Below are positions 6,679-64,000 of a stretch of DNA of 64,000 bases, piece by piece. Below the pieces are notes generated by a model. The model was not told the origin of the DNA and searched no databases. It was given only the letters and a program-made list of their open reading frames with translations. Both the position numbers and the translations under genes were made by a program. The DNA lies in the NCBI GenBank assembly GCA_002269645.1, contig NIVC01000038.1:310001-374000 (forward strand), written 5' to 3'. The DNA comes from Macrostomum lignano. Lineage: Eukaryota. Position 1 is the first letter of the stretch, and each line of letters begins with the position of its first letter.

Positions 6679-7428
6679 ATGTCCCCGTTGCAGCTCTTCA
6701 TACTTGCGTCAATTTTCCTGACGCTGTCAAGTCTTGAATTCTGTCTGACTAATTTTGTGCCTGTGCAATCGTCGAAATTTCGCTACCTCGGTTGCTATGT
6801 GGATTTATCGAACCGAGATCTGAAAGGGCTCCAATCGATCAGCACAATCGGCCCGTACTCAATAGTGTCCTCAGTCTTTGTCTACAACACTTCAATGACG
6901 CTGGAGCTGTGCAGCCAAATCTGCGCCTACGGCCGGTTCCGCTACTTCGGTGCTCAGAACACCGCCTACTGCAGCTGCGGCTTCACCTACGGACTGCACG
7001 GCGCCGCCACTGAGGACAGCTGCAGCGCCAACTGCCCCGGCAACTCAACTCAGAGGTGCGGCGCCAGCGGAAGAAACTCAATGTACGAACTCACCTACCC
7101 ACTGAGTGAGTAGCTTTTGCTGCGATTGCATCAATTTTTTAACTAATTATCATCTCCGAATACCGCAATTTATGAATCCTCAGGCGGAAACAAGATGACC
7201 GTGGAGTCTGCTGCGTCCATGCCGAACATCTCAGCCACGAGCAGCTCCATCATTTACAGCAGCACTGATGCTGGAAGCAGCACAGAGTGCATTGTGGCCT
7301 GCCACCTCAGCCAGGACTGCCTGGGCTGTGCCTTCGTACCTTCGAGCCGGATGTGCCGCCTGCTGAAGTTCGCCGCTGTGCCCGCTGAGGTGGCCAGCGA
7401 GACTGAGTGGGTCTGGATGAAGCTGTGA
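6679..7428 (+). CDS. Secreted WSC-domain + PAN/apple-like protein (2 exons: 6679-7105, 7184-7428; 223 aa)
   Basis: Hydrophobic signal peptide; WSC motif YLGCY.D...MTLELCSQIC...YFG.Q...CSCG...C...CPG.....CG; phase-1 GT..AG intron 7106-7183 joins in frame (A|GC GGA AAC AAG ATG); exon 2 has C...C.....C..C.F......C.L (PAN/apple-like). Confidence 0.85.
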
Positions 7429-13890: not shown

Positions 13891-14170
13891 GATGAGTCAG
13901 TGGCGCCAATACAGATGAGTCAGTGGCGCCAATACAGATGAGTCAGTGGCGCCAATACAGATGAGTCAGTGGCGCCAATACAGATGAGTCAGTGGCGCCA
14001 ATACAGATGAGTCAGTGGCGCCAATACAGATGAGTCAGTGGCGCCAATACAGATGAGTCAGTGGCGCCAATACAGATGAGTCAGTGGCGCCAATACAGAT
14101 GAGTCAGTGGCGCCAATACAGATGAGTCAGTGGCGCCAATACAGATGAGTCAGTGGCGCCAATACAGATG
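13891..14170. repeat. 23-bp minisatellite GATGAGTCAGTGGCGCCAATACA, about 12 perfect copies
   Basis: 23-bp period read directly. Confidence 0.95.
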
Positions 14171-15071
14171 GTCATTCGCACCGAGCCGCCATCACAGCTT
14201 ATAGGGATATATGATGTAACCACGCTCTGGTCGCGGGATAGGGCATGGGAACTTTTTCGAAAGTGCCTCCTATCCCGTGCACCCCCCTGCACAGAGCTGT
14301 CGAGACTCGGCCAGGTCTCCGACCAGGCCTGGAGACTCCCGCTCTGCTGCACCCCCCTGCTGCCTTGGCTCCATCTTCTCTGCCGCCACACTTGCCTTTC
14401 CGGAGCTTCCCCCTCCCTCTTTGTACCTCCCCCTCTACCCTATCTCCCCTGCGCTCTACCCTATTCTTCTTGTACTCTTCCTGACCCCTCTCTTTTTGTC
14501 TCTCTCTGCACTCTTTTCCTGCGCTATCCCCCCTTTTTTTGCGTCTACTTACAGTATTTTGTGTGCTCACCGTCTCCCCATCCCTTCTCAAACTCCCAAA
14601 CGGTGACGCAAGTCGTGTGACCCCTTATTCCCCTCGATGACTCATCGATGACTCACCCCCCTCCCTTGTGCAACCTTTTCTCATGCCATTGTTCTCCTCT
14701 CCAAATTTCTCATGCGACACCCACCCCACCTCCGCTTCTATTGTTCTCGTTTTTGATTCTTTTGTACTCTTTACCCCCACCAATTATCACATTTTCTCCG
14801 ATTTCCTCTTTCTATTGTTCTCGTTTTCGCACCTAATTATCACCTTTTCCCCAATGTTTGCTTTTCTATTGTTCTCGATTCTCCCCAATTATTCCCGATT
14901 TCCGATTCCTTTGTTCTCGATCCCAGCCCCATTGTTCTCAATGTTTGCTTGCGCAACACTTTCGCGACCACCCGCTGCGCCAATTATCCCCCCACCCCAC
15001 CTCCGGATTGCGCAATTCTCCCATTTCTCATGTTGCTATGCCGGTCTTATGTTTCTCATTATGACTATTTC

Positions 15072-15152
15072 TGACGTCATTCTGCCGGCAGCCAATCAGA
15101 GAGAGGGAGTCATGGAAACGACCTTGGAGAGGCGGCTGTGAAGGCTATAAAA
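15072..15152 (+). promoter_or_regulatory. Compact Pol II promoter-like module (CRE, CCAAT, TATA), possibly in a solo LTR
   Basis: TGACGTCA 15072-15079, CCAAT 15092-15096, CATGGAAAC 15111-15119, TATAAAA 15146-15152; GTAAGT donor at 15471. Confidence 0.45.
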
Positions 15153-16401
15153 GGAAGCGATTTCGGCATGAGAATCCTCAACTGAGTTTATCTCTGTTCC
15201 TCTCCTCGTCCTTCTTTGGACTTGCGGTCAGACATTGCTCTGACCTTCCCGTCTATCAGACGAACCCCTGCCGGTCCGTCTGTTACCGCCAAGTTATCTT
15301 CAGCTCCCCAAGCGAGCTCGCCTATCGGCCAGCGGTCTGATACCGCCCAGCATCATCAGCATCGCCTGATCTACATCAGCGCCTCGTCGCTTCACTGTCC
15401 GCCTGACTGCAGCCTACAGCCGCCCTCGGTCACTCCGTCTCTCTCTCTCTCTCTCTCTGTGCAGCTGCCGGTAAGTTCCTGTTACTGATTTGTGCTCTAA
15501 TCGCCTTTGCTTATCCGGGGTTTGCCTATTTGCCATTGCTTAATTAGAGAGCTGAGCCAATTGTGATACCGTAACCTTTGCTGTATTTTACTCAATAGTG
15601 AAGCCGCCTAATTGCCTGACTATTTGCCTAAGGGCCTAATTATTAACTATTAACTAACCTCATCATTATTCACTCTTTCACCATCATTTCACCCATGGCT
15701 TGCTAAGCCTTTCTCCCGGGGTGGCGAAGCATAAGGAAGTTTGGGTAAGCTAATGGCCTCTCCCCGTGCAAAGCTCGCCTATGAGTGCGTGCTGCGGGTC
15801 CGTGTCTGCGTGCTGTAGAGGGGATTAGCGGTTCATGGCACAGAATGGCAGCAGGAAGATTGCAACACCCTGCTTACGCGTCCCTTCGCCCTGAGCAATC
15901 TAAACTATATAGCTAGTGCATGTTCACCTCACACTATTCTTAGTAATTGACGCCGCAAGTCCGCCTCGCTCACAGCCACAAAGGATCCCCTGCTGAGAAA
16001 TCCTCCAGATTTAGCCCAGAGTTCCCGATCATGCCCCAAGCAGAGTCCCTGTACTCGGCTGCATGTGTCTCCCCTGTTAGCCTAAATCTCCTGGTAACCA
16101 TCCCAGGCGGGGCTCTAGCCTCGAGAGGTCTGGTAGAAAGATCCAGGTGCGCCAGGTCACATAGAGTGGTGGCAGCCAACTATTGCACCTTGGCTACAGG
16201 TGGGGTCCATGTGGGTCCTTGGCCCTCTGGTCACAAAGCGCTACCAAAGCTACCAATCATGTGGGCGGGACAGTCTGGTGCTGGAGGTCCGTCAGGTCAT
16301 TGCCCGGTCATAGGCAGCCTACGGTCATTGCCCCCTCTAGTCATGCGTTCGTCTCTCTACGGAGCGGACAGGCGACAAGGGCGGTTACATCATATATATA
16401 A

Positions 16402-16729
16402 TGATTAACTTTAGGGATCTTGCAGGTGATTAACTTTAGGGATCTTGCAGGTGATTAACTTTAGGAATCTTGCAGGTGATTAACTTTAGGGATCTTGCAG
16501 GTGATTAACTTTAGGAATCTTGCAGGTGATTAACTTTAGGGATCTCGCAGGTGATTAACTTTAGGAATCTTGCAGGTGATTAACTTTAGGGATCTTGCAG
16601 GTGATTAACTTTAGGAATCTTGCAGGTGATTAACTTTAGGGATCTTGCAGGTGATTAACTTTAGGGATCTCGCAGGTGATTAACTTTAGGGATCTCGCAG
16701 GTGATTAACTTTAGGGATCTCGCAGGTGA
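16402..16729. repeat. 25-bp minisatellite TGATTAACTTTAGGGATCTTGCAGG, about 13 copies
   Basis: 25-bp period read directly. Confidence 0.95.
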
Positions 16730-17812
16730 ATGGCTTTAAAAATGTTGTCTTGTATCCCTGTATTACATGAAAATTTCGCGTTGTACAGTCAAGAAATAAA
16801 TTAACAAAACTTGTTTTGCAGGACTAAAACATCAAAAAATGTTTGAGACTTGCGTTACTATGAGCAAAATAATGTTATTAAAAATTCATGCACGCATTTT
16901 TCATTAATTTTAATTTTAGCTGGATAAAGATTCTAAAAATTTTAACAAAACAAGTTTTCATATCAGATCAAACTATTTTATCATTTTTCTTTTGGTTTTT
17001 ACAATATGATCACATTGACAGAATTAAGATGAAAACAGAATTGTAACAGATGTTGATTAGGCTGTCAGTCACTGAATGTTCATGAGAACATGATGAAATC
17101 AATTTGCAGTCTGATTCAGAGGATTCTGAGAGCAGGTGCTTAAATAATCGAAGAGCATGTACACACAATATTTGAAGCGATATAATAAGAACATCTTTAG
17201 AAACATATTTATCAGAAATATGTGAAGCAAAATTTCTCAAACAGCTCGCGAAAAAGCTAGAGAAGCTTACAAAATTCCGAGTACAACTCAAGCTGCTGCA
17301 TCAAGTCTCTCCAGCTTCTCCCTGACCCAGCCGACCTTCGGATCTTCCAGTTCATTTGCATTTGGCTTGAATATTTCATTAAAAAGCATTGGCAATTGGG
17401 TATTGAAGTCCGCAGAACAAAATCGCAGAGAAAAGCCCGCATCAAAGCAGACACGCAGTTTGAACGGAAAAAGCAGTTCAGCATGCAGTGTGAATTCAAT
17501 TGCAGCACAAATATGCAAAACTGCAGTTCATAGCAGGAGGGCTGCTCGCACTCGATGGCTCTCGACTTGCTCATTTCCTAGAAAAGCAACAAAGTCAACA
17601 AGAAAAAATCCATAAACAATAAATTAAGATTATTCATTGTCAAAGGATATTTTGGCATCTAAAAAGAATTAAACTAAAAACTAAAAAACTTACCGACTCA
17701 ACTAATTTCAACAGAAAAACAAGGAAACCCAATTGTAAAAGTACACTGTTATAATTAGGGCTGAAAGTAAAGTGCAGAAAAACTTGAAAATCTGATCAAC
17801 GAAGTCCTCAGG

Positions 17813-19503
17813 TCACTTCAGTCTCATCCGACTGAGCTTGGCGTGAGTCCAGCTGTCTCTCTGCTCCGCTGCTGTGTCCATGGCAACAAGGCGACCCAAG
17901 TCGGCCCCGTCCCGCCGCAGCCTCGCCCTCGCCCACAGCCTCCGCTCCTCATCTTCCCTGCTGCGGTGAGCGCCGCTGTCGCTGCCGCTGCGATTCGAAA
18001 CTCGCCACCGCTTCTGCCCGACCCAGCCGATCTTCTCCTCGTCCTGCGTCTCCATGGCGACGCGTCCCTCTTTCTCGATCATCTCCATCTGCTGCAGGCT
18101 GAGCTCCACGTGCTCGCGGCAGTCGCTGTAGTGAGCCAGAGTGAGCAGCTCCTCTAAGTCCGGGTCACCATGCAGCACCTCGGAGTCCGGGTTACTCCGC
18201 ACCTGCAAGAGCGGGTATCTCCGCAGCTCCTCCAAGCGCCGATATCTCTGCAGCTCTTCCAACTCCGGGTCTCCAAGCAGCTGTTCAATCCAATGATCGA
18301 ATGCGATTGCAGGTGCGCGATTGCGGAGCAGCTCAGCTTGGAGACTCCAGCTCAGGCAGCGGAAGTTCACGTACAGGTGGGAGGAGAGAGGCTGCGACAG
18401 TCTGGCTGTGAACAGAATCTGCGTGAACTCGGGAAGGAATGGGAAGCGAGGCGGAGAGTCGCAGGGGAGACAGAACCTCCACACCCAGTCTGAGTCTTCT
18501 GACAGTTTTATCTTGATCCGGTACACGCTACTCTCGTCTCGAATATCCTGTGGCTTCAAACCTGACTCAAACTGATGTCTCTGCAGCTCCATCGCGAGTC
18601 TCTCAGCCTCCTCAGATTCTCCGAACTTCAAATGCGCCATGGCGGTCATGCACATTGCGGCGCACTTGCACCACTGCAGCTCATGCAGGAGACTGAGGTG
18701 CTTCATCAGGGTGTCTCTGTCGCTCGATTCCGACTGCAGCTCGCTCACACACTGGTGCACCACACTGTACACGTTTGCGAACTTTGAATAATTTCCTTCC
18801 GTGATCTCCGTGACAGCAGGCGGCGCTGTCAGAGGCAGCAGAGTGAACGGGTGAAAGTAGAACTTCTCTGACTGCAGAGGTCTCACGAGTGTCTTCAGCT
18901 GCTCGACCACTCCGCCGATGTCGCTTCTCAGCTCACAAATTCGGTCTCGAACCCTCGCCTTCGTGTTGTCGAAGTCGCCGCCGATTCCAGCGTTCTTGAA
19001 GTAGAGCGGAGCGTCGGGCATGAAGAAGTGCGGCATGCACTCATCGGGCGAGCTGCTCGAGTCGATAAAGCTCAGCATCATGTCGAGAGACTCCTTGAGC
19101 AGAGCGATCAGATTGTGGGGCTGCCAAGCCTCAGTTTTAGGATTTGTGCCATGCTTCTCCAGCATTGTGAAGAGCAGAGTCTTTGCATGGTAGGTCTTGA
19201 GTCCAGGTGTGTCCAGAGTGAGCGGCAAGTGTCTCTTGAAGATGAACTTGATGAGTGTGAACAGCTGGCCCTGGACTGTGCTCAGCCGTCTCATGATCCG
19301 TTTCTCTTGGAAGCTGAAGCTCACTCTGAGCTCGTTGGTCGAGCTTGGTCTGGTCGCCCGAACGAGGTGAACATTATTAGGACTTTCTCCAAGCAGTTTT
19401 GCAATTCTATCCTTACAAAAACTGCTGCAGCACCGGATCGCATGGCACGTGTCCTGTGCAGGCCGCACACCGCACGCCGTGGCTGTCACTGCAGGTTGGC
19501 TGC
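17813..19503 (-). CDS. cGLR-A terminal exon: Mab-21 domain plus helical C-terminal extension
   Basis: 558-aa ORF; Mab-21 helical-lobe motifs; acceptor CTCTGCAG at 19504, in frame with the upstream exon. Confidence 0.9.
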
Positions 19504-22500
19504 CTGCAGAGCGCAGTGAGAGTCAGATTGTGGCCAGTGAAAAAGATGACTCTGTTTGAAACTGCTTTTTTAGTTTTTCAAAACCCATGAACTCATCGGA
19601 GTTGATGCGATTTACCGGATTTTACAACTTTTTAAAGCTTTTTATTTTTTAATTCTTGATTTGATTGCATAGCAATAGGACAGGACAGGCTTTCTCAGTT
19701 TTCAGCTCAAGCATCATCAGGAATCAGTGCCCAGCAGCAAGGCACCAATCAGGCAGTCAAAGGGAAGGGCGGCTTCGGCTTATTTTGTCACACTTTAAAG
19801 GTATGAGGCAGCTCTGAATGCCTTGTGAATTTCAAATACTTTGATGATAAACCCAGCCTCACTCACCAGCTCCCACTGACACCTGTGCGTGGCCCTCCTT
19901 GATCTTCAGACAAGTGTCGTATCTGCAAAAGTCCTGGCTACTATTTTGTTTGCAGCCACCTTCCAGATGAAACTTTTGCCCAGCAACCAGCACAGTCCAG
20001 TCAATGTCCGAGTCTGCAGCTGTCCTGCCGTTCACTTTCACCAGACTGTTGGCCCAGCCCTCTGCGTAGCTGCCCGTCATCTGCCTGCCATCCTGTGTGA
20101 GGACTCGAGCGACTCCTTCCAGCCAGTCAGCCAGTCTCTGCTGACACTTTGCTCTCTGCTCGGTGAATCCCGCACCGTTGAGCAGTCGATGCAGCTCCTC
20201 GCTCAGGCGCATGTCTTGCTGGGAGTCGTCTGAGAGCCTGGAATGATCCGAGATGCGTGTGGGTGACTAGCTCAGAGTTGGATGGACAGAACATGCAGGA
20301 GAGCTGAGAGTGCAGCTGCTGCAGCACTCAAACCGGCATCTCAAGCAAGACAGCTGAGAGTGCAGCAGCATTCAGCCCCTACTAACCCAACCTCAACCCG
20401 GCTGCAATTTCTGCTCCAAGCTGTCTTCCTGCTGGAAGGCGCAATGCGGCAGTGAAAGCCGAACCGGTCAGACTCACCGATGGAGGCCCGAATCCAAGCG
20501 GTGAGTAGCTTCCTGACGGGCTTCTGGGCTTCTGCAATGCGGGAAGGAGAGCCATGCAGGCTTTTCACAGAAGAGAAACTGAGCCAAGTAATTGACTTTG
20601 AGGAGCAAATATTTTTTTTGACACAATGCACACTACGTTTCTGAAAATACTTAATGAGAAAGCAGAAATGCATTGGCAGTTGTGTGGGGAATGCGCCGCG
20701 CCTAAGCCAGCCCTGCTTCATTTCACTGGCGGTTGTCAGCCCCTTTATTTTTGCTCTTCGCCGGCCAGAGTGGGGGCACCACAGCCTAGCCTTTTAGGGC
20801 CTGGTTGGCTGAGGCTTGATTTCTAATTTCATTTCTGTTTGTGTTCGCGTTACACCCGTCTCACGCTGATTGGCTGCACAGACTCGAGTCACGATCGACC
20901 CTGTTGTTTTTGTCTTTGGTGGTTACTTAAGTCCCACTTTCCTACCCCTCCCTCTGTTTTTTCTCCACTCCCGCGTGCACTCCGGCTAGCAGCTCTATAA
21001 TTCTACTGAGAACCCCTGCAGTCCACTTTATCGAACTTCTTAGCCAGCTCCAGATTGCTCCCAGATTCCTTCGTTAGCCGCACTAAAAACTCACCCCGCT
21101 CTGGTGGGATCTAGAAGCCGCAGCACCTGCCGCTGCTCGAATCGCTGTGCCACCTGCGCACACGTCAGACCCCGACCGTCTCGATGGCTGGTTTCGGCTC
21201 TTCTGTCAATCAGAGCCTTGGCTGCTCGCGCGTGACCGGCTTCGCACGCTCGTGACAGAGCAGTCCGACCCTGACTGTCTTCAGCACGCACTGATGCACC
21301 GAGATCGATGAGTTTCTCAATGAGCTCGTGATGACCTGCATCAGCTGCCAACATGAGAGCAGTGGCTCCAGTGCTGTCTGGCAGATCGAAATTTTGTATG
21401 CTAAATCGCTTATCATTGATCAGTGTGACAGCAAGAGCGACGTGTCTTTGAGAGATGGAGAGACGAAGAAGCTGTGTGATGCGAGCTGGCTGCATTCGAG
21501 AGAGGGTGTCGGTGAGAACAGAGTTCCTGCCTTCGATCGCCATTGCTGCAGTGAAGCTGAGAATGGAGTTGGATTGGAAGAGCCAGTCGGGCTCGAGGCC
21601 GAGGAATGCAACGACATTTTCCTGAAGATAGGAGCAAGCCGCGACTGCGCATTGCAAACGGAGATTCGTTCTCTGATCCGGACTTGAGAGGCTCGAGATG
21701 AGGAACATGACGACTTTCAATTGACCACTTTTTGCAGCAGATTTGGCAGCTTCCATGCGGCAATCATCTTTTGCTTTATCAGCGACCGTCTGCAGAAGAA
21801 ACTTGACGACTTGTAGGTGACCCTTTTCTGCAGAAGATTCGGCGGCTTGGATGCATAAATCATGTTTTTTAGTTTGGTCAGCGACTGTGTGGACAAGAAA
21901 CTTGATGACTACTAGGTGACCACTTCTTGCAGCAGATTGGGCAGCTTGGATGCATAAATCATCTCTTTTAGTTTGGTCAGCGACTGTCTGGACTAGAAAC
22001 TTGACGACTTCTAGGTGACCATTTCTAGCAGCAGATTGGGCAGCTTGGATGCGGAAATAATCTTTTTTAGTTTGATCAGCGACTATCTGGACAAGAAAGT
22101 TGACGACTTCTAGGTGACCTTTTCTAGCAGCAGATTGGGCAGCTTGGATGCAAGAATCATCTTTTTTAGCTCGATCAGCGACTGTCCGGACAAGAAACTT
22201 GACGACTTCCCATTGACCAAAGATTGCAGCTGAATGGGCAGCTCGGATGCAGGAATCATCTTTTTTAGCTCGATCAGCGACTGTCTGAACAAGAAACTTG
22301 ACGACTTCTAGGTGACCCTCCATTGCAGCGGAATCGGCAGCTTGGATGCAGGAATCATCTTTTTTAGTTTGGTCAGCGAATGTCTGAACAAGGAACTTGA
22401 CGACGTCTAGGTGACCTTTTATTGCAGCATATTCGGCAGCTCGGATGCAGCAATCATCTTTTTTAGTTTGGTCAGCGACTGTGTGGACAAAAAACTTGAC

Positions 22501-24435
22501 GACTTCTAGGTGACCATTTCTAGCAGCAGATTGGGCAGCTTGGATGCAGAAATCATCTTTTTTAGTTTGGTCAGCGACTGTCAGGACAAGAAACTTGACG
22601 ACTTCTAGGTGACCCTCAACTGCAGAAGATTGGGCAGCTTGGATGCAGAAATCATCTTTTTTAGTTTGGTCAGCGACTGTGTGGACAAGAAACTTGATGA
22701 CTTCTAGGTGACCACTTCTTGCAGCAGATTGGGCAGCTTGGATGCAGAAATCATCTTTTTTAGTTTGGTCAGCGACTGTGTGGACAAGAAACTTGACGAC
22801 TTCTAGGTGACCATTTCTAGCAGCAGATTGGGCAGCTTGGATGCAGAAATCATCTTTTTTAGTTTGGTCAGCGACTGTCAGGACAAGAAACTTGACGACT
22901 TCTAGGTGACCATTTCTAGCAGCAGATTGGGCAGCTTGGATGCAGAAATCATCTTTTTTAGTTTGGTCAGCGACTGTCAGGACAAGAAACTTGACGACTT
23001 CTAGGTGACCATTTCTAGCAGCAGATTGGGCAGCTTGGATGCAGAAATCATCTTTTTTAGTTTGGTCAGCGACTGTGTGGACAAGAAACTTGACGACTTC
23101 TAGGTGACCATTTCTAGCAGCAGATTGGGCAGCTTGGATGCAGAAATCATCTTTTTTAGTTTGGTCAGCGACTGTCAGGACAAGAAACTTGACGACTTCT
23201 AGGTGACCATTTCTAGCAGCAGATTGGGCAGCTTGGATGCAGAAATCATCTTTTTTAGTTTGGTCAGCGACTGTCAGGACAAGAAACTTGACGACTTCTA
23301 GGTGACCATTTCTAGCAGCAGATTGGGCAGCTTGGATGCAGAAATCATCTTTTTTAGTTTGGTCAGCGACTGTGTGGACAAGAAACTTGACGACTTCTAG
23401 GTGACCATTTCTAGCAGCAGATTGGGCAGCTTGGATGCAGAAATCATCTTTTTTAGTTTGATCAGCGACTGTGTGGACAAGAAACTTGACGACTTCTAGG
23501 TGACCATTTCTAGCAGCAGATTGGGCAGCTTGGATGCGGAAATCATCTTTTTTAGTTTTGTTAGCGACTGTCTGAACAAGGAACTTGACGACGTCTGGGT
23601 GATCCTCCATTGCAGCGGAATCGGCAGCTCGGATGCAGCAATCATCTCTTTTAGTTTGGTCAGCGATTGTGCGGACAAGAAACTTGACGAATTCTAGGTG
23701 ACCCTCAACTGCAGAAGATTCGGCAGCTTGGATGCAGAAATCATCTTTTTTAGTTTGGTCAGCGACTGTCTGAACAAGAAACTGGACGACTTCTAGATGA
23801 CCATTGGTTGCAGCAGATTGGGCAGCTTGGATACAGCAATCATCTTTTTTATTTTGGTCAGCGACTTTCTGGACAAAAAACTTGACGACTTCTAGATGAC
23901 CATTGGTTGCAGCAGATTTAGCAGCTTGGATGCAGGAATAATATTTTTTAGTTTCGTCAGTGAATGTCTGAACAAGGAACTTGACGACGTCTAGGTGACC
24001 TTTTATTGCAGCATATTCGGCAGCTCGGATGCAGAAATCATCTCTTTTAGTTTGATCAGCGACTGTGTGGACAAGAAACTTGATGACTTCTAGGTGACCA
24101 CTTCTTGCAGCATATTCGGCAGCTTGGATGCAGCAATCATCTTTTTTAGTTTGGTCAGCGATTGTCTGGACAAGAAACTCGACGACTTCCCATTGACCAT
24201 CGCTTGTAGCATATTCGGCAGCTTGGATGCAGTAATCATCTTTTTTAGTTTGGTCAGCGATTCTCTTCAAAAAAAACGTGACGACGTGTAGGTGACCATA
24301 TCGTGCAGCCAGTGGAGCATTTCTTATGCAGAAGCGGGTTTTGGCTGTTTGTCGTGGTCGAAGCAGCAGATGAGCTCTGAGTGCGGTGATGTTGCCAGTG
24401 GTGACAGCTTCATGGGAGCTGATGTATTGGCCCAT
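17813..24435 (-). CDS. Ankyrin-repeat cGAS-like receptor (ANK-cGLR/Mab-21 nucleotidyltransferase), copy A; predicted exons 24435-21095, 20531-20478, 20237-19867, 19503-17813; 1818 aa
   Basis: All three introns are GT..AG with consistent phases (2,2,1) and total length 5457 nt. NTase motif GSYAEG..DSDID, third Asp in QDTCHAIRC, Mab-21 motifs LRVSFSFQE, LIKFIFK, LKTYHAKTLLF, PHFFMP. Exons 2-4 are conserved with copy B. Confidence 0.8.
19867..20237 (-). CDS. cGLR-A exon with spine helix and NTase signature (GS..DxD)
   Basis: RLSEELHRLL..GF..QR; MTGSYAEGWANSL..AADSDIDWTV; acceptor TTCCAG and donor GTGAGT conserved in copy B. Confidence 0.88.
21095..24435 (-). CDS. Ankyrin-repeat exon (about 27 x 33-aa repeats plus C-terminal canonical ankyrins); exon 1 of ANK-cGLR-A
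   Basis: Unit AAQSAARNGHLEVVKFLVxTVADQTKKDDFCIQ (99 bp); canonical repeats TALMLAADAGH, GRTALSRACEAGH. The ORF ends GG|GTGAGT, so the apparent TGA lies within a donor site. Confidence 0.9.
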
Positions 24436-37850: not shown

Positions 37851-38069
37851 TTAAAAAATTCTTGGACACTGGAACCCAGCAGGCAGCTTTAACGACTCTT
37901 AGCGTGCTCTTAAAGTACTTGTAGTTATTGAGACAAGTCTATGAGCTAAGTCTGTTTTTAGAAATAAAGATAAATGTACTTAGTCCCGCTGATAGCGCGC
38001 AAAACGCGGCTGAGCTACGCTAGAGCAAGATTCAAGATTATGTTAATCCAGGAGATATAACAACTGGCT

Positions 38070-38370
38070 ACAAGGATGGCCCTCAACAACGTGAACCCAC
38101 CAGCACCGTTTCTGCCAGCAAGCGGGTCGTTGGCAGTCCCATGAAATTGATGGCTCGACGCCTTCGATGTCTTGAAGTGTTGCCGACTGGCTCGCGCAAA
38201 TCTGGACTTCATCTGCTCGGTATCGAGGGGCAGCGGATAGCTCGGGCTCTAAATGCGAATCCCGATGAGCAGACTTTCTGGCAAACTCGAGATCTGCTGA
38301 CGAACGTATTCGGCAACCAGCCAAATTTGATGCTTGCACGCCACAAATTCCGGGAACGTTATTAACTACC
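38070..38370 (+). mobile_element. Gypsy gag N-terminal fragment
   Basis: PAPFLP.SG..AVPW..W...F and LHLLGIEGQRI..L..F.NQPNL.LARHKFRER. Confidence 0.55.
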
Positions 38371-52989: not shown

Positions 52990-55829
52990 TCAGAATGACT
53001 CAGCCTTCCTTTTTCGGCCTCGACGTTGTGACTCGACTTTGAGGACTCCGGCTGCTGCATCAAGTCTGTCTAACCTCATCAGTCTCATTCGACTGAGCTT
53101 GGCGTGAGTCCAGCTGTCTCTCTGCTCCGCTGCAGTTTCCATGGCAACAAGGCGACCCAAGTCGGCCCCGTCTCGCCCCAGCTTCGCCCACGTCCACAGC
53201 CTTCGTTCCTCATCTTCCATGCTGCGGTGAGCGCCGCTGTCGCTGCCACTGCGGTTCGAAACTCGCCACCGCTTCTGCCTGACCCAGCCGATCTTCTCCT
53301 CGTCCTGCGTCTCCATGGCGACGCGTCTCTCTTTCTCGATCATCTCCATCTGCTGCAGGCTGAGCTCCACGTGCTCGCGGCAGTCGCTGTAGTGAGCCAG
53401 AGTGAGCAGCTCCTCCAAGTCCGGGTCCTCTTTCAGCTCTCGCTGCCAATCCTCCAGTTTGATTGAAGATGCTTGATTGCGGAGCAGCTCAGCTTGGAGA
53501 CTCCAGCTCAGGCAGCGGAAATTCACGTACAGGTGGGAGTAGAGAGGCTGCGACAGTCTGGCTGTGAACAGAGTCTGCGTGAACTCGGGAAGGAATGGGA
53601 AGCGAGGCGGAGAGTCGCAGGGGAGGCAGAACCTCCACGCCCAGTCTGAGTCTTCTGGCAGTTTATTTGACCCATATTTATCTGTTCGAATATCCTGTGG
53701 CTGCAACCCTGACTCAACCTGATGTGTTTGCAGCTCCATCGCGAGTCTCTCAGCCTCCTCAGATTCTTCGAACTTCAAATGCGCCATGGCGGTCATGCAC
53801 AGAGCGGCGCACTTGCACCACTTTTGCTCATGCAGGAGACTGAGGTGCCTCATCAGGGTGTTTTTGTCTCTCGATTCCGTCTGCAACTCGCTCAAACACT
53901 GGTGCACCACACTGTACACGTCTGCGAACTTGTAGTACATTTTTGAACAGTCAGTTCTTTCCCTGATCTCCGTGACAGCAGGCGGCGCTGTCAGAGGCAG
54001 CAAAGTGAACGGGTGAAAGTAGAACTTCTCTGACTGCAGAGGTCTCACGAGTCTCCTCAGCTGCTCCACCACTCCGCCGATGTCGCTTCTCAGCTCACAA
54101 AGTCGGTCTCGAACCCTCGCCTTCGTGTTATCGAAGTCGCCGCCGATTCCAGCGTTCTTGAAGTAGAGCGGAGCGTCGGGCATGAAGTAGTGCGGCATGC
54201 ACTCATCGGGCGAGCTGCTCGAGTGGATGAAGCTCAGCACCATGTCGAGAGACTCCTTGAGCAGAGCGACCAGATTGTGGGGCTGCCAAGCCTCAGTTTC
54301 AGGATCTGTGCCATGCTTCTCCAGCATTGTGAAGAGCAGCGTCTTTGCATGGTAGGTCTTGAGTCCAGGTGTGTCCAGAGTGAGCGGCAAGTGTCTCTTG
54401 AAGATGAACTTGATGAGTGTGAACAGCTGGCCCTGGACTGTGCTCAGTTCTCTGATGATGTGTTTCTCTTGGAAGCTGAAGCTCACTCTAAGCTCGTTGG
54501 TCTCACTCGGTCTGGTCGCCCGAACGAGATGAACATCAATGAATTTCTTATCAAGCATTTTTTCAATTCTGTCCTCACAGAAACTGCTGCAGCACCGGAT
54601 CGCATGGCACGTGTCCTGTGCAGGCCGCACACCGCACGCCGTGGCTGTCACTGCAGGTTGGCTGCCTGCAGAGCGCAGTGAGAGTCACTTTGTGGCGAGT
54701 GAAAAAGATGGGTCTGTTTGAATCAGCTTCTCTAGTTTTTCAAATACCCTTAAACCCATCGGGATTTTACTGGATATTCCACCTTTTTTATGTTTTTAAA
54801 TTTTTAAATTATTTATTTCATCACAGCAAGGCACCACTCAGGCAGTCAAGGGCGCGGCTTCGGCTTATTTTGTCACACTTTACAGGGTATGAGGCAGCTC
54901 TGCATGCCCTGTGAATTTCAAACCCTGAAAAGGACCTGAATTATTTAAAATTTTGCATTCGGCTTCGATTTTCAGGCAGATCTCGGAACTTTGATGATGA
55001 ACCGAGCCTCACTCACCTGCTCCCACTGACACCTGTGCGTGGCCGTCCTTGACCTGCAGCTGAGTAGCACCTTTGCAGGAACCATATCTTCCTCCGCAGC
55101 CACCTTCCAGATGGAACTCTTGCCCATCAACCAGCACAGTCCAGTCAATGTCCGAGTCTGCAGCTGTCCTGCCGTTCACTTGCACCAGACTGTTGGCCCA
55201 GCCCTCTGCGTAGCTGCCCGTCATCTGCCTGCCATCCTGTGTGAGGACTCGAGCGACATATTGCAGCCAGTCAGCCAGTATCTGCTGACATTCTGCTCTC
55301 TGCTCGGTGAATCCCGCATCGCTGAGCAGTCTATGCAGCTTCTCGCTCAGGCGCCTGTCTTGCTGGGGGTTGTCTGAGAGCCTGGAATGATCCGAGATGC
55401 GTGTGGGTGATTTTCTCAGTGTTGGATGGACAGAACATGCAGGAGAGCTGAGAGTGCAGCTGCTGCAGCACTCAGACTGGCATCTCAAGCAGGAGAGCTG
55501 AGAGTGCAGCTGCTGCAGCACTCAGACTAGCATCTCAAGCAGGAGAGCTGAGAGTGCAGCTGCTGCAGCACTCAGACTGGCATCTCAAGCAGGAGAGCTG
55601 AGAGTGCAGCTGCTGCAGCACTCAGACTGGCATCTCAAGCAGGAGAGCTGGGTGCAGCAGCTCAGCCCTACCAACCCAATCTCAAGCCTGCTGAGTTTCT
55701 CTTCTATTTCTGCTCCAAGCTGCCTGCCTGTTGGAAGGCGCAATGCGGCAGTGAAGCCGAACCGGTCAGACTCACCGATGGAGGCCCGAATCGAAGTGGT
55801 GAGCGGCTGCCTGCCGGGCCTCTGGGGTT
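52990..55829 (-). CDS. cGAS-like receptor (cGLR/Mab-21 NTase), copy B; exons 55829-55776, 55381-55017, 54665-52990; 5' exon not in the expected position
   Basis: Same exon structure, splice sites and phases as copy A; GSYAEG..DSDID and QDTCHA intact; all three exons open; no ATG at the position of the copy A internal Met. Confidence 0.85.
55439..55650. repeat. 50-bp intronic tandem repeat, about 4.3 copies (about 1.5 copies in the copy A intron)
   Basis: GCAGGAGAGCTG starts at 55439, 55489, 55539, 55589, 55639. Confidence 0.9.
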
Positions 55830-57794
55830 CTGCAATGCGGACAAGAGATCCGGCTTTAACAGAAGAGAAACTAAGCCAAGTAATTAAGTTTGAATGACAA
55901 ATAATTTTGACACTGCATGATAACTTTATAGAATTTCAAGCCGAATTTCTCAATTTACTCAATGAGAAAAGCAAAAATGCATTGGCAGTTGTGTGGTGAA
56001 TGCGCCGCGCCTAATCCAGCCCTGACTAATTGCACTGGCTATTGTCACCCCTTTATTTTTGCTCTTCGCCGGCCCAGAGTGCGAGGCACCCAAGCCGAGC
56101 CTCTTGCGCCTTGTTGGTTGCGGCTTGATTTCTAATTTTCATTCTGAACCCCTCCTCTTTGATGCCTGCTGCTAATAAAGTCTGGTTGCATTGAGTCGTG
56201 TTGGGTTTACCCCCGTATCACGCGTGATTGACTGCACAGGCATGAGTTGCGATTAACCCTTCTGTCAGTCGTTTATTTCACTCTAATTGATTGGCTGGGT
56301 AGTTTTTGGTGGCTACTTAAGTGCCAATTTTTTACCCCTCTCTGTTTTTTCTCCCCTCCTACTGTGCGCTCCGGCTAGCAGCTGTATAATTCCACTGAGA
56401 ACCCCGGCAGTCCACTTTATTGAACTTCTTTACCAGCTCCAGATTGCTGTCAGGCCCCCTTCGTTGGCGCTACGCCGTGTCCATTTGACGATCTGTTACG
56501 TCCGACATGTTATGTTTGACGTATAAACTTTTATGAAGAGATTATCACAGACGATTTTAATCCCGCGTATTCGAGCGGCCAAGGTTTTTCCTTTTATTTT
56601 CCTTTTCTTTTGCTGTGGCCCTTTAGCATCTAGCTAGACAGGCCCAGCCCATAAACAAATAGCGAAAATGTCAGAATAGAATATATATATTAACATACAA
56701 TACGCATCATTCCCCTTTGTCAACAAAACAATTGTTTGATATGACAGTTCAGTTCATAGCATCAGTTTCTGAATTCACTTTGCTACAAAAAATCCGGTTT
56801 CTTCAGCTTTGATCGATCCCGCAAAATTCGCTTGTTAGCCAATTGATGATTGCCGTTGCCTTCAGAGTCGCTCTTAGGTTTGTTCGGTGTTGCGTCTTGT
56901 CCTTTGCTTTTGTCTATGGCTCTCTGAGTAGAGATCCCGATGTTTCAGTTTCCTCCTGGGCTGACTTCCATGCATTGCACTCAGAGGATGCACTAGCATT
57001 GTGTCATGCTGTACGCTCATTATTCCACGCTTAGGAATCATTATTTTAGGCTTCTAAAAATACATTCATGAGACAATGTGTTTGTGTATATGGTTTTGTC
57101 ATAGACAATGATAAATTTTAGTCACTCGTGGCTTCGCCACTCGTGAAAATTTTATCATCGTCTACCTGGTACCTCCAAAACCATATACACAATCTATCAT
57201 TATTCGAGGGCTGTAGCTTTTCATTGAATCCACTATCTAGTGTAGGCGGAGCTTCCAGTTCGGACTTAAAGAGGTGATCAACATGCCTTTTCCAAATCTG
57301 TCCGTTGACTTCAACTTGATAGAATAGCGGTCCAGTTTGCTTGATCACTTTAGCGTGCGCCCATTTGTTCTCATTCTCTCTCCTGAAGTCAAGAGCAAGC
57401 ACAGTGTCGCCAACCTGAAACTCTCTCTGTGGAATCTGTTCCCGGCGCATTATCTGCTCACTTTGCGAGTCCAGCACTTTCCCGTACGTGTCAGGCTTGA
57501 GGAAATCCACTTTGGTCCTCCTGGTATATGCGAGTATCATCTCAGCTGGTGACTTGCCGGTGGTGCTGTGTGGAGTGCTTCGATATCGAAATAAGAAGTT
57601 CTGCAGGCTAAAGATAGGATTTCCATGGCTTTTCTTACCTGCTCTGATTGCTTTCTTTGCCGTTTGAACCATTCGCTCACTGAGTCCATTTGTTTTTGGA
57701 TGTCCAACTGCACTGAATATATGCTTAATTTTATTCGATTTGGTGAATTCGACAAATTCTTGTGATGTAAACTGACTTCCATTATCTGTTAGTA

Positions 57795-57992
57795 TGAAGC
57801 AGTCATTTTTACTAATTTGTACTTTATTTATAAATTCCTAAGACCTTTATTTTATCAATAACGCATCTCTGCCCATAGAAATAAAACCAATACTGTACCG
57901 ATGCAAACTAATGTTAAAGCCCCTGCGCATCAAGTGACAAAATAAACTCGCGTTTCCACTGTTAATAAATTCTACTTGTAGCAGCAGCTACA
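57795..57992 (+). repeat. 5' LTR of inner Gypsy
   Basis: Direct repeat of 62098-62275 with a ~20-bp indel. Confidence 0.9.
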
Positions 57993-57995
57993 AAC

Positions 57996-58013
57996 TGGTA
58001 GCAGAGCGTGGTT
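57996..58013 (+). other. Primer-binding site complementary to the initiator Met tRNA 3' end
   Basis: TGGTAGCAGAGCGTGGTT, 3 nt after the LTR; matches the invertebrate tRNA-iMet 3' end as I recall it. Confidence 0.8.
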
Positions 58014-58018
58014 CCCAA

Positions 58019-58855
58019 ATGTCAAGCACCGAAACTCCTGCTGCTTTGGCCAGCGCGTCTGGTAACGCACCGGCGGTGGACGAGCAGAACCAACCTTTGC
58101 CTCCACCCCAGCCAAATGAACTCAGCCGGGTCGCTGTTCGACCTCCAGCTTTCTACCGGAAATCACCGGAGACCTGGTTCAAGCAACTCGAATCGCAATT
58201 CGCGCTTGCAAACATCACCAACGGCGTCACAAAATACCACTACGCTCTGGCAGCTCTCCCGGAAGACATCGCCTGCGAGCTCAACTTTGACAGCAATAAT
58301 TATGACAACTTGAAGACTGCGGTATCCGACAGCCTGCGAGCCAACCGTCATCAGCTGATCGAGGAGGCCTTGTCGGCGGTGGAGCTCGGCCAGAGGAGAC
58401 CAAGCCAACTCGTTACCGAGATAAAACGGCGGTTTACAGAAGTCGGCCTGAAGGTCGACGATGCCATTGTGAAGTCACGCTTGATTTCAGCGCTGCCAGC
58501 TAACATCTGCTCAGCCCTCGTCGGACACGAAAGTAGCCCGCTGGACACCTTCGCAAAGATAGTAGACAGTATGCTCGCTGTCGCTGGTCGTCCTTCTCCT
58601 TTCTCCGACATCAAACGGCTCGCCGCAGCTGAATGGACAGAGCTGCCGGCGCCCCAAAATCCGCGCCGGCCGGCTGCCCCTGGCCATCGACAGCAGCGAC
58701 CACTCATCTGCAATGCACACATCTACTACGCTAACAAGGCTCGGACCTGCCGACCTTGGTGCAAATGGCCAGGCTCGAAGCCGGCAAACCTGCTTCGCCA
58801 AGGCCAGTCGACGCCAGCCCAGTCTCGTTCTTCATCGCCATCCCCAAACGAATAA
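58019..58855 (+). CDS. Gag of inner Gypsy element (278 aa, open)
   Basis: RVAVRPPAFYRKSPETWFKQLESQF..TKYHY; C-terminal ICNAH..A..C..WC.W. Confidence 0.8.
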   Translation: MSSTETPAALASASGNAPAVDEQNQPLPPPQPNELSRVAVRPPAFYRKSPETWFKQLESQFALANITNGVTKYHYALAALPEDIACELNFDSNNYDNLKTAVSDSLRANRHQLIEEALSAVELGQRRPSQLVTEIKRRFTEVGLKVDDAIVKSRLISALPANICSALVGHESSPLDTFAKIVDSMLAVAGRPSPFSDIKRLAAAEWTELPAPQNPRRPAAPGHRQQRPLICNAHIYYANKARTCRPWCKWPGSKPANLLRQGQSTPAQSRSSSPSPNE

Positions 58856-61800
58856 GTCATGTGAAGCGGCCGAGCCATGACAACGATCAGGCCCGTACGC
58901 CGTTAGTCTCTGCCCAAGTTCTGGGTTCCAACGTTCAGTTCATTGTCGACACCGGCGCCGAGAAATCGCTCCTTCCTCCCTGTTTCGTTCCGTTCAACCT
59001 CACTACTCCATGCAACGTTCAACTTCGTGGTGTCAGCGGCCACAATGTACGGTCCTACGAGCTATGGCCAATGCGCCACTTCAATTATGGTAAAAGGCCT
59101 CCGCCGCACCTTTCATGCCAACTTTATAATCGCAGAGACAGCACCAAATTTCGGATCCGATTTCCTAGCATCCTATGGCATATCCGTCGACATGGGAGCC
59201 AAGTGCCTTCGAGACCCGCTTACCTCGTTGACTGCACCGCTTCGATTTGACACCAAAAGCAATTTCCAACCACCGTCAATCCAGGTGGTTTCTAATGACA
59301 AAGGCAACGATTACTTCAGCCACTTTCCTGGCCTCACATATGCTCCAGATTACTCGGTTCTGCCCACCACTCCGTTGAAACATCACATCATCACATCCGG
59401 GGACCCGGTTTTCTGCAAGCCTCGCCCGCTCTCACCGGCAAAGTATACCGCAGCCAAGGCGGAATTCGACAAGCTTCTTCAGATGGGCATCGTTCATCCG
59501 TCATGCAGTCCTTGGGCTTCACCTCTCCACATGGTGAAGAAGCCGGATGGATCTTGGAGACCATGCGGAGACTACCGCGCCCTGAACAGCGCCACGGTAC
59601 CCGACAGGTATCCACTGCCTCACATTCGGAATTTTCACCACCAACTCCATGGCAGCCAAATTTTCAGAAAACTAGACTTGGTCAAGGCATTCCACTTCAT
59701 ACCAGTCGCTGAAGAGGACGTCGCCAAGACAGCAATCTGCACACCGTTTGGCTCCTTCGAGTACATCAGGATGCCTTTCGGGTTGCGAAACTCCGGCAGC
59801 ACATTCCAGCGTTTCATCGACTCGCTATTTCGTGACATGACTAGTGTCATCACGTACCAGGTACATTGACGACATCCTCATCCACAGCAAATCGGAGAGC
59901 GATCATCACAGAGACGTCCAGATTGTGATGCAACGACTTCACAACGAGGGACTTCGAGTGCAGCCAACTAAGTGCCAGTTTTTCCAGATCAGCATCGAGT
60001 TCCTCGGTCATCTGGTCTCGGCGTCCGGGATCCAGCCACTTCCATCTCGTGTGGAGACGCTGCGTCAAATCTCACCTCCGAACGATTTCAAGAGTCTACA
60101 GCGCGTACTCGGCATGTTTGGCTTCTACCAACGCCACATCCCCAACTACGCAAGCATCGTATTGCCTCTGCGATCGCTAAACGACGCCGATTACAAATGG
60201 CAGCCGGAGCACGATTCCGCGCTCTTAGAGCTTCAAGACGGCCTAGCCGCAGCGGTGACTCTAGCATTCCCGACCACTACAGGAAACTTCACGATCACGT
60301 CGGATGCAAGCTCCTTCGCCATCGGCGCCAGCCTCCACCAAGGAAAAAAACGGCGACTCAGTCCCCATCGCTTTCTATTCTAGGAAGCTCACTCAAACAG
60401 AGACATCGTACAGCGCATTCGATCGCGAGCTTCTCGCCGTGTTTGCCGCAGTCAAAACCTGGCGCTACCTAATCCATGGACATCCAACGACTGTATTCTG
60501 CGATCACAAGCCATTGATTGGCGCTTTCCACAGCAACAAAGAGCGTCTCTTCGATCGGCAGCAACGCCAGTTGGCTACTATCTCAGAATACGTCACTGAC
60601 GTCATCCACATCCCTGGCGCCAAGAACGTCGTCGCCGACACTCTCTCTCTCTCGAGACATTACTCGACCAGACGAATGCACAATCAACGTTGTCCAAGCC
60701 AAAAAGCTAGATCTACCCGCCGACCTGCCGGCGATCGCCAAGGCATAATGTGAAGCAAAACTTGCTGACGATGACCGCTACCGTCCGTTCGACATCGGTT
60801 TGCTGGACTGCCCACTGTACTGCGAAACCTCGCAGCCAAATCCGCGACCGGTCGTTCCGGAATGTCTACGTCGACAGATCGTCCAATCATTGCACAGCAT
60901 ATCTCATCCAGGTATCAAAGCTACTCTACGTTTAGTTGCCTATCGTTTTTTCTGGCCCTGCATGAAGTCAAATGTACAACGGTGGACGTCTGATTGCACA
61001 CAATGCCAAGCAGCCAAGGTTGGTCGTCACGTACACCGCCCGTTACACCATTTGCCTTCACCGACACAACGTTTCACAACTGTTCACATTGATCTGGTCG
61101 GACCACTCCCGCTGCCCGACACCGTCGAAGCAACCTCTCAACCACGATACCTTCTGACCATGGTGGACTCGTACTCCCGTTGGGTCGAGGCGATTCCGTT
61201 AAACTCCATCACAAGTATGGCTGTAGCACAAGCCTTCGTCAGCCACTGGATCTGCCGTTTCTCACATTGATCACCGACCAAGGAGCACAGTTTCGATCGG
61301 AGCTGATGGCAAATCTGGTGAACCTTCTTGGGGTCCATCACATACGCACATCTGCCTACAATCCCAAGGCCAATGGAATGATCGAGAGAGTCCATCGCAC
61401 GCTGAAAGCCGGTCTGAGAGCTCGTGGCCATTGCTGGTTGACTCAGCTTCCTATCGTCCTGTACGGCCTGCGGATCAATCCGGACGACAAAGGAAACTCA
61501 CCATTCTCGATCGTGACAGGAGAGCAGCCACTGGTCCCACCTGTCACCAACGAAGATACCGACCACCACCAGCTGTCAACTCGATTACACGATCTTTTCT
61601 TTCCATACCGCCTTCCGCGAACGCGATAGCAGCCGGTCCACTTGCCATCCGAACTGGCGTCCTGCAACTTTGCCTGGCTGCGCGTCGACAGGGTACGACA
61701 CCCACTTGAAGCGCCGTACCAAGGACCATACAAGGTGCTGCGCCGTTCCGACAACACGATGACACTGGAAATCAAAGGCAAACAGCAATCTGTATCAATT

Positions 61801-62097
61801 GAGCGAATAAAACCAGCCAGACTGCCAGACAGTCAACGACAGACCCGTTCAATGACAGCCGCCCAACCGCAGGATTCGCGTCCAGGTGTTCCCATTCCGA
61901 GGGAACCGACCAGCTCGCCCACGCCTACTCGACACGTTCACTTTTCGGACTCACCTGAAGTTAATGTTTTTAACTAAATTATACTATATTCCACTTCACT
62001 AACTAACACTAGCACTAATTTTACTAATACGAGCGTAATATTTTGACGTTTCGCTTGCCTAGATACCTGCACTCTTTCTCCGTGAGGGGGGAGTATT

Positions 62098-62275
62098 TGT
62101 AGCAGTCATTTTTACTAATTTGTACTATACTTTATCAATAACGCATTTCTGCCCATAGAAATACAACCAATGCTGTACCGATGCAACCTAATCTTAAAGC
62201 CCCCTGCGCATCAAGTGACAAAATACACTCGCGCGTTTCCACTGTTAATAAATTCTACTTGTAGCAGCAGCTACA
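62098..62275 (+). repeat. 3' LTR of inner Gypsy
   Basis: TGTAGC..GCTACA; preceded by PPT GAGGGGGGAG (62084-62093). Confidence 0.9.
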
Positions 62276-64000
62276 AGTATTTGTCGTGGAATTACAAAAC
62301 GGGCAAACGTCACTCTGAAACGTTGAATAGTGTTAAAAGCGTTCGCAACCTTCAATGGAAAGATTTCCACCCATTTCGATGTAGCATCAACAATCACCAG
62401 TCAGTTGTATCCATAGCACGGTCCAAAGAAATCTGCTTGCAGTCGTGTCCATGGCTTCTCAGGCCAACTGAGAGGGTTTACAGTCGATTCCAGCGGCTTG
62501 CTTTGCTGCAGTTCACATCCTTTGCATCACTTCACAGATCTTTCTATTTGCTTGTCAATTCCAGGAAACCAGACATGCAGGCGAGCAAATGATTTCATTG
62601 AAACAATTCCGGGATGACCCTCGTGCAGCAGGTCTAGAACATGATTTTAAAGCCTGGCTGGAACAATGACTCGAATACCCCAGAAAATGACTCCTTGTTC
62701 CAGACAGAGCTCGTTTCTCTTCTGGCGGTAGGTCTTCAGCTCATCGTTGCATCTATCTGGCCAGCCATCTTAACAAAACCTAATAACTTTGCTTAGTATT
62801 GGATCTCGTGACGTCGCCCGACGAATCCCATCAGCTCTTATAGGCAATTCCGGAAGTCGATGTTCCATGACTTCGTCGATACGAGATGGTGAGCTTGGAA
62901 GTGGCAACCGAGACAACGCATCGGATTGCCGTGTTCTTCCGTCTTCCTGAATCGGATTTCGTACTGGTGAGCTGAAAGCAAGACTGCCCAACGCTGCAAT
63001 CTACTAGCGAAAATGCTAGGAATGTCTTTCTTTTCTCCGAAGATGGTGATCAGAAGCTTGTGGTCCGTTACCAATGTAAACTTATTGCCAAATAAATACT
63101 GATGAAGCTTCTTGATCCCAAAAATGAAAGAAAGGGCCTCTTTTTCCAACTGAGAATAATTCCGTTCAGCCGATGAAAGAATTCTGGACGCAAAACAGAT
63201 TAACATTTCAATCACGTTGGACATGGTGTGGGGCAAGACGCATCCCAGTCCGTACTTCGATGCATCGGTGTGCAGAAACATCGGTTTCTTCGAGTCAAAG
63301 TGCACAAGCAGTCTTTCTTATGTTAGTAGTGATTTCACAGAATCTAAAGCTGATTGGCATTGGCTGTTCCAGCTGAATGTCACATCATTTCTTAGCAGTC
63401 GATTCAGTGGGGCCAAACAGACGACAAGTTCGGTATGAACTTCCCGTAGTAGTTGATGAGTCCCACTAGGGATCTGACTTCGGACACACTACCAGGATTT
63501 GGTGCATTTTGCACAGCACTGACCTTGTCTGGTGATGGGTGCAAACCATTGCAGTCGATTACATGGCCCATAAATTCCACCTTTTCTAATCGAAACTTGC
63601 ACTTTTCTTTGTTGAGCCTCACACTTCTGGACTGCAGTACATTCAGTACTTGGTGCAGCTTCTGGTCATGCTCCTCAAGTGATTTTACTGATATTAAAAT
63701 ATCGTCGATGTACGCCACTACTTCTAGTCCATTAAGGATCTTCTCAATTGCTTCCTGGAACTGGGCAGGAGCAGAGGCCAACCCCATAGTCAGTCGGTTG
63801 AATTGGTACAATTCCATACGTGTATTTATCGTCGTATACTTCCTGCTGCTCTCTTCCAACTCCAGTTGCAAAAAGGCCTGGGAAATGTCAAGTTAAGAGA
63901 AGTACTTCCCGCCATTAAGAGTAGCGAACATTTCTTCTTGCCGCGGTAGCGGATACTGATCCACTTCTAACTGTGGGTTTATTGTCCTTTTAAAATCTGC

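Follow-up and report, generated by a model that had tools for sequence, protein, structure and literature searches.

A four-exon gene joining a 26-unit ankyrin array to a predicted cGAS-like receptor in Macrostomum lignano

The cGAS-like receptors (cGLRs) have been defined by predicted structural homology to cGAS, a G[S/G] activation loop and an [E/D]h[E/D] X50–90 [E/D] triad (Li et al. 2023, PMC9980059). In the same study, 13% of cGLRs carry extra domains, ankyrin repeats among them (Fig. 1C and Table S2), and most platyhelminths are credited with Mab21-like proteins only. Its screen of 140 enzymes includes five proteins of Macrostomum lignano, a species that goes unmentioned in the main text; two of the five, #93 (PAA68676.1) and #92 (PAA93208.1), are close paralogs of the gene described here, and PAA68676.1 is listed with Ank_2 in Table S2 and was cloned by the authors. 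No ankyrin-bearing cGLR (ANK-cGLR) is known to have a described ligand, product or function of its repeats, and a literature search on STING in Macrostomum or other flatworms and on characterised ANK-cGLRs returned nothing beyond it. Here we analyse a 64,000-nt window of the M. lignano genome (contig NIVC01000038.1, assembly GCA_002269645.1, positions 310,001 to 374,000; all positions below are those of the window), in which a gene on the minus strand, copy A, joins a long ankyrin array to a Mab-21/cGAS-family core, and a second locus, copy B, repeats its enzyme part.

The closest described relatives of copy A are the ANK-cGLRs catalogued in that study, among them the cloned PAA68676.1 (P0003 in our numbering of retrieved proteins; BOX15_Mlig016402g1), which belongs to the same family, is 79% identical over the cGLR part and shares both the ankyrin-then-cGLR order and the G-S and acidic-triad motifs, but has three variable ankyrin units where copy A has 26. 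Human and mouse cGAS, Sp-cGLR1 and Cv-cGLR1 (PDB 4k9b, 8gjy and 8gjw) share the predicted fold, the G-S loop and the triad columns with the window protein at an identity of only 14–18%; these known enzymes are single-domain nucleic-acid sensors, whereas the window protein adds ~1,100 aa of ankyrin sequence, a 334-aa helical tail, an 8-residue insertion and a CHx3CCx3C cluster. MAB21L1 and MB21D2, which are without demonstrated nucleotidyltransferase (NTase) activity, have the fold family and the Mab-21_C domain in common with it, but Mab21L1/2/3 lack a predicted functional active site (PMC9980059) and the window protein keeps all motif residues. The nearest relatives outside Macrostomum are mollusc-type cGLR-TPR fusions (P0138, P0139 and P0151), which likewise combine a Mab-21 core with helical repeats but carry the TPRs at the C-terminus, have no ankyrin array and are 17–22% identical. 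In NOD-like receptors (NLRs) and in the OAS/RNase L system, a variable solenoid is paired with a signalling module, and the ankyrin repeats of RNase L bind the product of an OAS-family NTase. The window protein has no NACHT or NB-ARC domain, and its likeness to either system is one of analogy only. The caution in the preliminary description of this stretch that an ankyrin–Mab-21 fusion might not in itself be new is borne out by Li et al. 2023 (PMC9980059), where ANK-cGLRs and the family of copy A itself already appear. The architecture and the family are therefore published, and what is new here is a large, locally unannotated member and not a new kind of receptor.

Gene structure and paralogs of copy A

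The four exons of copy A (Table 1), joined by a scripted splice, give a coding sequence of 5,457 nt and a single frame of 1,818 aa whose sole stop codon is the terminal one. The introns are in phases 2, 2 and 1, all three donors read GTGAGT, and the acceptors of exons 2, 3 and 4 read TTGCAG, TTCCAG and CTGCAG, respectively. The ankyrin open reading frame (ORF; 24435–21091, 1,114 aa) terminates GCG GG/GTGAGT, with its TGA inside the donor site, while exon 2 ends CG/GTGAGT and exon 3 ends G/GTGAGT. Because read-through of any of these introns meets a stop within one or two codons, copy A appears in a plain ORF list as four separate frames. Across the junction, the joined protein reads ...DPTRAG-SPEARQEATHRLDSGLHR-LSDDSQQDMRLSEE.... 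The coordinates, the phases, the TGA within the donor and the 1,818-aa frame had all been proposed in the preliminary description, and they held when the minus strand was read over 19400–21200 and the exons were joined. A TGA within a donor was considered as a special device and rejected, since any phase-2 intron beginning with GTGAGT reads ..G TGA.

The same architecture recurs in annotated M. lignano proteins. With the 704-aa C-terminal part as the query, 47 proteins were retrieved, all from M. lignano and 55–86% identical, and about 40 of them hold ankyrin domains and the Mab-21 part in one model. The junction ...RLLDxxxAG / SPEARQxAxHxLDSGLHR / LSDDSQQD... is common to P0001, P0002, P0008 and P0011. 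By tblastn, P0002, P0001 and P0011 are colinear with the four exons of the window at 78–83% identity, the 18-aa micro-exon included, and the P0002 locus (NIVC01001976.1) has the identical four-exon layout with one exon of 54 nt. The gene models of M. lignano derive from a genome-guided RNA-seq transcriptome with trans-splice and polyA evidence (PMC5730564). Given this colinearity, micro-exon included, the joined frame is not to be ascribed to chance, and the single fused ankyrin–Mab-21 frame proposed earlier finds its counterpart, in architecture and junctions alike, in RNA-seq-derived paralog models. Both the exon layout and the junction peptides match annotated members of the M. lignano ANK-cGLR family, and we hold the four-exon gene model and the assignment to this family with high confidence.

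The N-terminus encoded by exon 1 matches those of P0011 and P0003. It reads MGQYISS (24415–24435, −) and fits the N-myristoylation pattern G-{EDRKHPFYW}-x2-[STAGCN]-{P}, so that a membrane anchor is possible; an MGQxxS start is also found in P0003 (MGQNQS) and P0011 (MGQNLS) and is absent from P0001 and P0002. Some models of relatives include extra domains, namely a protein kinase (P0008), a caspase (P0053), WSC and RING domains (P0048) and AAA_33 (P0125), which may reflect true fusions to effectors or the merging of adjacent genes into one model. The window itself contains a WSC-domain ORF at 6679–7113 (+).

The enzyme core and the ankyrin array

The AlphaFold2 model of the 704 aa has a mean predicted local distance difference test score (pLDDT) of 83.9 and a predicted template modelling (TM) score of 0.85. 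Its 28 best Foldseek matches in the PDB are cGAS, followed by MAB21L1 and Sp-cGLR1, with E values down to 5e-8 and TM scores (target) of ~0.55. In an alignment of 52 sequences, residues G1187-S1188, D1209-I-D1211 and D1273 of the window protein (also numbered G73-S74, D95-I-D97 and D159) occupy conserved columns, and 61 residues separate the second acid from the third; D1273 is encoded in exon 4 at 19453–19451 (−). The family profile built from this alignment matched Sp-cGLR1 (4e-35), Cv-cGLR1 (6e-24) and cGAS (~1e-22), and aligned GS with GS, DiD with EFD and the third D with the corresponding D of cGAS. A family profile was needed for these PDB matches, because a single-sequence phmmer search of the PDB with the window protein returned a chance match only. 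A profile of four divergent relatives reached 261 clusters at E ≤ 0.001, 101 of them at E ≤ 1e-10, and the distant clusters are PF03281 and PF20266 proteins, several with C-terminal TPRs. In silico, the window protein thus combines all three features by which Li et al. 2023 define a cGLR. The cGAS fold, the G-S loop and the acidic triad support the Mab-21/cGAS-family identity given to this part of the gene in the preliminary description; catalytic competence of copy A is predicted from the motifs and the model.

An 8-residue insertion (W-A-N-S-L-V-K-V; 20015–20065, −), which distinguishes the Macrostomum family from mollusc-type Mab-21 proteins, separates the G-S loop from the D-x-D pair. A family-conserved Cys/His cluster, D-T-C-H-A-I-R-C-C-S-S-F-C (19415–19453, −), comes immediately C-terminal to the third catalytic Asp; it might bind a metal or form a disulfide, and its location differs from that of the zinc thumb in cGAS. 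A Foldseek search of the PDB with the model of the 334-aa tail gave nothing better than E 0.08 and weak TPR-like matches only.

The ankyrin region of exon 1 is recognised by Pfam (Ank_2, 8e-123; Ank_4, 3e-117) in 16 stretches, and Tandem Repeats Finder (TRF) describes it as a 99-bp period in 26.4 copies with 88% matches. Besides the 25 clear units there is a degenerate 26th, down to ~21667, and the hidden Markov model gives 26 matches in total. Both the Pfam matches and the 33-residue period identify these as ankyrin repeats, and the units keep the register of the classical consensus (AAxxGHLEVVKxL), although the variable ones lack the TPLH motif. In the pairwise unit matrix, 10–28 of 99 nt distinguish the outer units from the core. 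Positions 13 and 14 of the unit are the most variable, both within copy A and across 141 paralog units, followed by 25, 26 and 10. Residues 13 and 14 of an ankyrin repeat line the binding groove, and they are randomised in designed ankyrin binders.

Divergence from the paralogs is concentrated in the array. Identity is 31–46% in the variable array, 74–83% in the conserved ankyrin module, 82–87% in the cGLR part and 85–90% in the tail. Copy A has 26 units compared with a maximum of 10 and a median of 3 of the same unit type among 184 retrieved relatives, whose counts could be lowered by collapsed assemblies or truncated models. The size and the turnover of the array had been singled out beforehand as the unusual part of the gene, and the comparison agrees on both. 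Array length may evolve through unequal crossing-over between 99-bp units.

Table 1 Features of copy A, copy B and adjoining sequence in the window
Feature	Position	Strand	Description
Whole gene, copy A	17813..24435	−	4 exons, 3 introns; splice reconstruction and colinear tblastn of M. lignano paralogs
Exon 1	21095..24435	−	start codon at 24435 (MGQYISS...); whole ankyrin region, aa 1–1113 and 2 nt of codon 1114
Variable array	21766..24240	−	25 clear 33-aa (99-bp) ankyrin-like units; TRF and unit table
Units 9–15	22756..23448	−	perfect 297-bp (3-unit) higher-order repeat; 9=12=15, 10=11=13=14, 0 nt differences
Conserved C-terminal ankyrin module	21095..21765	−	aa 891–1114, canonical repeats; best Pfam Ank stretches aa 1014–1085
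Intron 1	20532..21094	−	phase 2, GTGAGT...TTGCAG; homologous to copy B intron up to ~21059
Exon 2	20478..20531	−	54-nt linker micro-exon, 18 aa (SPEARQEATHRLDSGLHR); peptide also in P0001, P0002, P0008, P0011
Exon 3	19867..20237	−	N-terminal half of NTase core; G1187-S1188 20074–20069, D1209 20008–20006, D1211 20002–20000
Exon 4	17813..19503	−	remaining NTase core, Mab-21_C, C-terminal helical domain, stop codon 17815–17813
Mab-21_C (HhH/H2TH-like), PF20266	19004..19216	−	26.4–27 bits, cut-off 24.1
C-terminal 334-aa domain	17816..18817	−	family-conserved; AlphaFold2 pLDDT 81, mostly helical with small sheet
Copy B, tandem paralog of exons 2–4	52990..55829	−	55829–55776, 55381–55017, 54665–52990; 698-aa open frame
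Nested LTR-retrotransposon sequence	56480..64000	.	upstream of copy B, begins where A/B homology ends; reverse transcriptase, integrase and gag ORFs

Copy B and the surrounding locus

Copy B is 85% identical to copy A and keeps the G-S loop and the acidic triad; the ratio of nonsynonymous to synonymous divergence (dN/dS) between the two is 0.64 at a dS of 0.127. The preliminary description had pointed to an open 54-nt exon in copy B that differs at third codon positions. The exon is indeed open, and the amino acid is unaltered by GAA/GAG, CGT/CGG and GCT/GCC, but amino-acid replacements occur at five other codons. By blastn, the homology between the copies runs in A from 17059 to 21059, ending ~35 bp downstream of the exon-1 donor, and in B ends at 56448. 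No ankyrin exon was found between copy B and the end of the window (~7.5 kb), where long terminal repeat (LTR) retrotransposons lie upstream of it, so that the window cannot show the 5' end of copy B. A 12-bp minisatellite of 87 copies (50814–51856) lies between copies A and B, and a 50-bp repeat runs to 4.6 copies in intron 2 of copy B (55439–55666) and to only ~1.7 in that of copy A (20292–20376). A conserved stretch that ends in ...GWV(R/K)E(K/Q)LERLDAAA stands 3' of both copies (17288–17518, −; 52245–52661, −). It resembles the EEKIGWV... segment within exon 4, the extended C-termini of P0002 and copy B, and the entry point of the kinase in P0008, and could represent either an alternative 3' exon or a duplication of that segment.

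A cytochrome P450 gene with at least two exons lies at 8749–11160 (−), and its exon at 10243–11160 is 98% identical to M. lignano BOX15_Mlig026100g2. The locus of that gene (Mlig_3_7, NIVC01000143.1) is colinear with 6.6–19.5 kb of the window at 95–99% identity, so that the window is a duplicate of that block or the same region in another assembly. An intact exon-4 ORF is present in the syntenic reference stretch. Window positions 13891–18166 are 97.8% identical to the syntenic contig and the exon-4 sequence at 18250–19544 is 89.3% identical, while copy B (53080–54706) is 93.2% identical to the same reference stretch (278–1910 of the extracted locus, L002). This mosaic of identities suggests gene conversion or recombination among paralogs. 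The window is rich in transposons, with elements bearing reverse transcriptase at 38000–40400 and 44300–47100 in addition to the nested LTR elements, and a MULE-transposase ORF and a zinc-finger ORF are located at 1531–3147.

Interpretation and significance

We favour the reading that copy A is a four-exon ANK-cGLR gene of M. lignano, belonging to a large lineage-specific family, with an enzymatic core and an array that serves in recognition or control; this is probable, at a strength below that of the gene model itself. In domain order, an MGQxxS N-terminus is followed by ~26 fast-evolving 33-aa units, the conserved ankyrin module, the 18-aa linker, the Mab-21/cGAS core, Mab-21_C and the 334-aa helical domain. 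The ankyrin solenoid would serve recognition or regulation, whether by engaging a ligand, proteinaceous or not, or by keeping the core inhibited, and the activated core would make a nucleotide second messenger. Specificity could evolve via changes at groove positions 13/14 and 25/26, and array length via exchanges between the 99-bp units. Like the preliminary description, we infer a sensor role for the array, in an NLR-like design, and we put forward this pairing of a sensor array with an active enzyme tentatively, as a plausible mechanism rather than the expected one. The further proposal that the array is a true recognition module for a protein or other non-nucleic-acid cue, that the protein signals through some receptor other than canonical STING and that array length is an evolvable or polymorphic determinant of specificity is speculative and seems improbable at present.

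Several observations weigh against the favoured reading. The ankyrin repeats could equally serve localisation or scaffolding. The newest units (9–15) are identical, so the latest growth of the array added length and neither diversity nor new specificity. Transcript-derived support for the fused model comes from the models of the paralogs and not from copy A itself. In the Pfam search, which the preliminary description had set as a check, the ankyrin families and PF20266 were matched, the latter just above threshold and hence marginally, but the PF03281 NTase domain gave no match above the gathering threshold with either the single exons or the spliced 704 aa. None of the five screened M. lignano cGLRs is labelled among the 15 enzymes chosen as active, and Table S5 of the same study, whose flatworm coverage consists of cestodes and does not list Macrostomum, records 0 cGLR and 0 STING for six cestodes (PMC9980059). 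No gene model is called at the syntenic reference locus. This gap could plausibly stem from the GenBank annotation of M. lignano, from which transcripts overlapping annotated repeats were deliberately removed (PMC5730564), and copy A is hidden only in the narrow sense that no gene is called at that stretch.

The best of the competing explanations, which we consider unlikely but the most serious of them, is that the protein is a non-enzymatic Mab-21 scaffold, as proposed for MAB21L1, working as an ankyrin and helical-repeat adaptor in which the NTase motifs are kept but unused. The undetected PF03281 and the absence of M. lignano enzymes from the labelled active cGLRs both fit such a scaffold, as do the presence of MAB21L1 and MB21D2 among the fold and profile matches, the fairly high dN/dS of the NTase part (0.71 between copies A and B) and the loss of an acidic residue in some members of the family, P0008 reading D-I-G and P0040 D-S-I-K. 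However, copies A and B and most relatives retain the G-S loop and all three acids (97 of 109 match [DE]x[DE] in a rough pattern count; the corresponding count for the third acid is likely too low and is given no weight), and the best structural and profile matches are the active enzymes cGAS and Sp-cGLR1, not MAB21L1.

Alternatively, the locus might yield mainly separate products, namely an ankyrin-only protein that terminates at 21091, because intron 1 is retained or polyadenylation occurs within it, and an mRNA for the cGLR alone with an internal or trans-spliced 5' end, with the fused isoform minor or absent. A frame continued into intron 1 terminates immediately, and the AATAAA near 20750, ~340 nt into the intron, leaves room for an extra ankyrin-only isoform. 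M. lignano trans-splices many mRNAs, and ~7% of its assembled transcripts are polycistronic precursors (PMC5730564). Ankyrin-free members of the family exist (P0005 and P0040), and copy B lacks an ankyrin exon within 7.5 kb. Nevertheless, phases are compatible at all three introns of copy A and exons 2–4 of copy B have the same entry phase, the linker micro-exon is conserved as coding sequence, and the annotated paralogs are fused in about 40 of 47 cases with the same junction peptide. The cGLR part also has no conserved initiator Met, as M1140 of copy A (QQDMRLSEE) is Arg in copy B and P0001. Separate products as the main output are therefore doubtful. It is likewise unlikely that mis-assembly produced the 26-unit array, or that copy A is a recent, unexpressed duplicate decaying into a pseudogene, in either of which cases the size of the array would have no functional meaning. 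Seven units are identical in DNA, a situation prone to assembly error, no record matched the ankyrin ORF exactly and the copy A protein is not in public protein sets, the syntenic locus has no model, and the gene sits amid transposons with mosaic identity to its paralogs, but the frame stays open through 3.3 kb of repeats and all exons, the flanking older units have diverged in an orderly way, exon 4 is intact in the syntenic reference copy too, and the dropping of repeat-overlapping transcripts can explain the missing model (PMC5730564).

Copy A overturns nothing known. If sensing of a non-nucleic-acid cue were to prove true, it would place cGLR signalling in the flatworms, a phylum whose cGLR immunity is otherwise reported as lost. 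The reference annotation lacks repeat-rich members of the family, and published counts of M. lignano cGLRs are for this reason likely too low. With its 26 units, a still-perfect higher-order repeat and variation at the groove positions, copy A is an extreme case of the fast-evolving part of the family. M. lignano is amenable to transgenesis and RNAi (PMC5730564), and its ANK-cGLR family offers a reasonable system in which to study how cGLRs gain new inputs.

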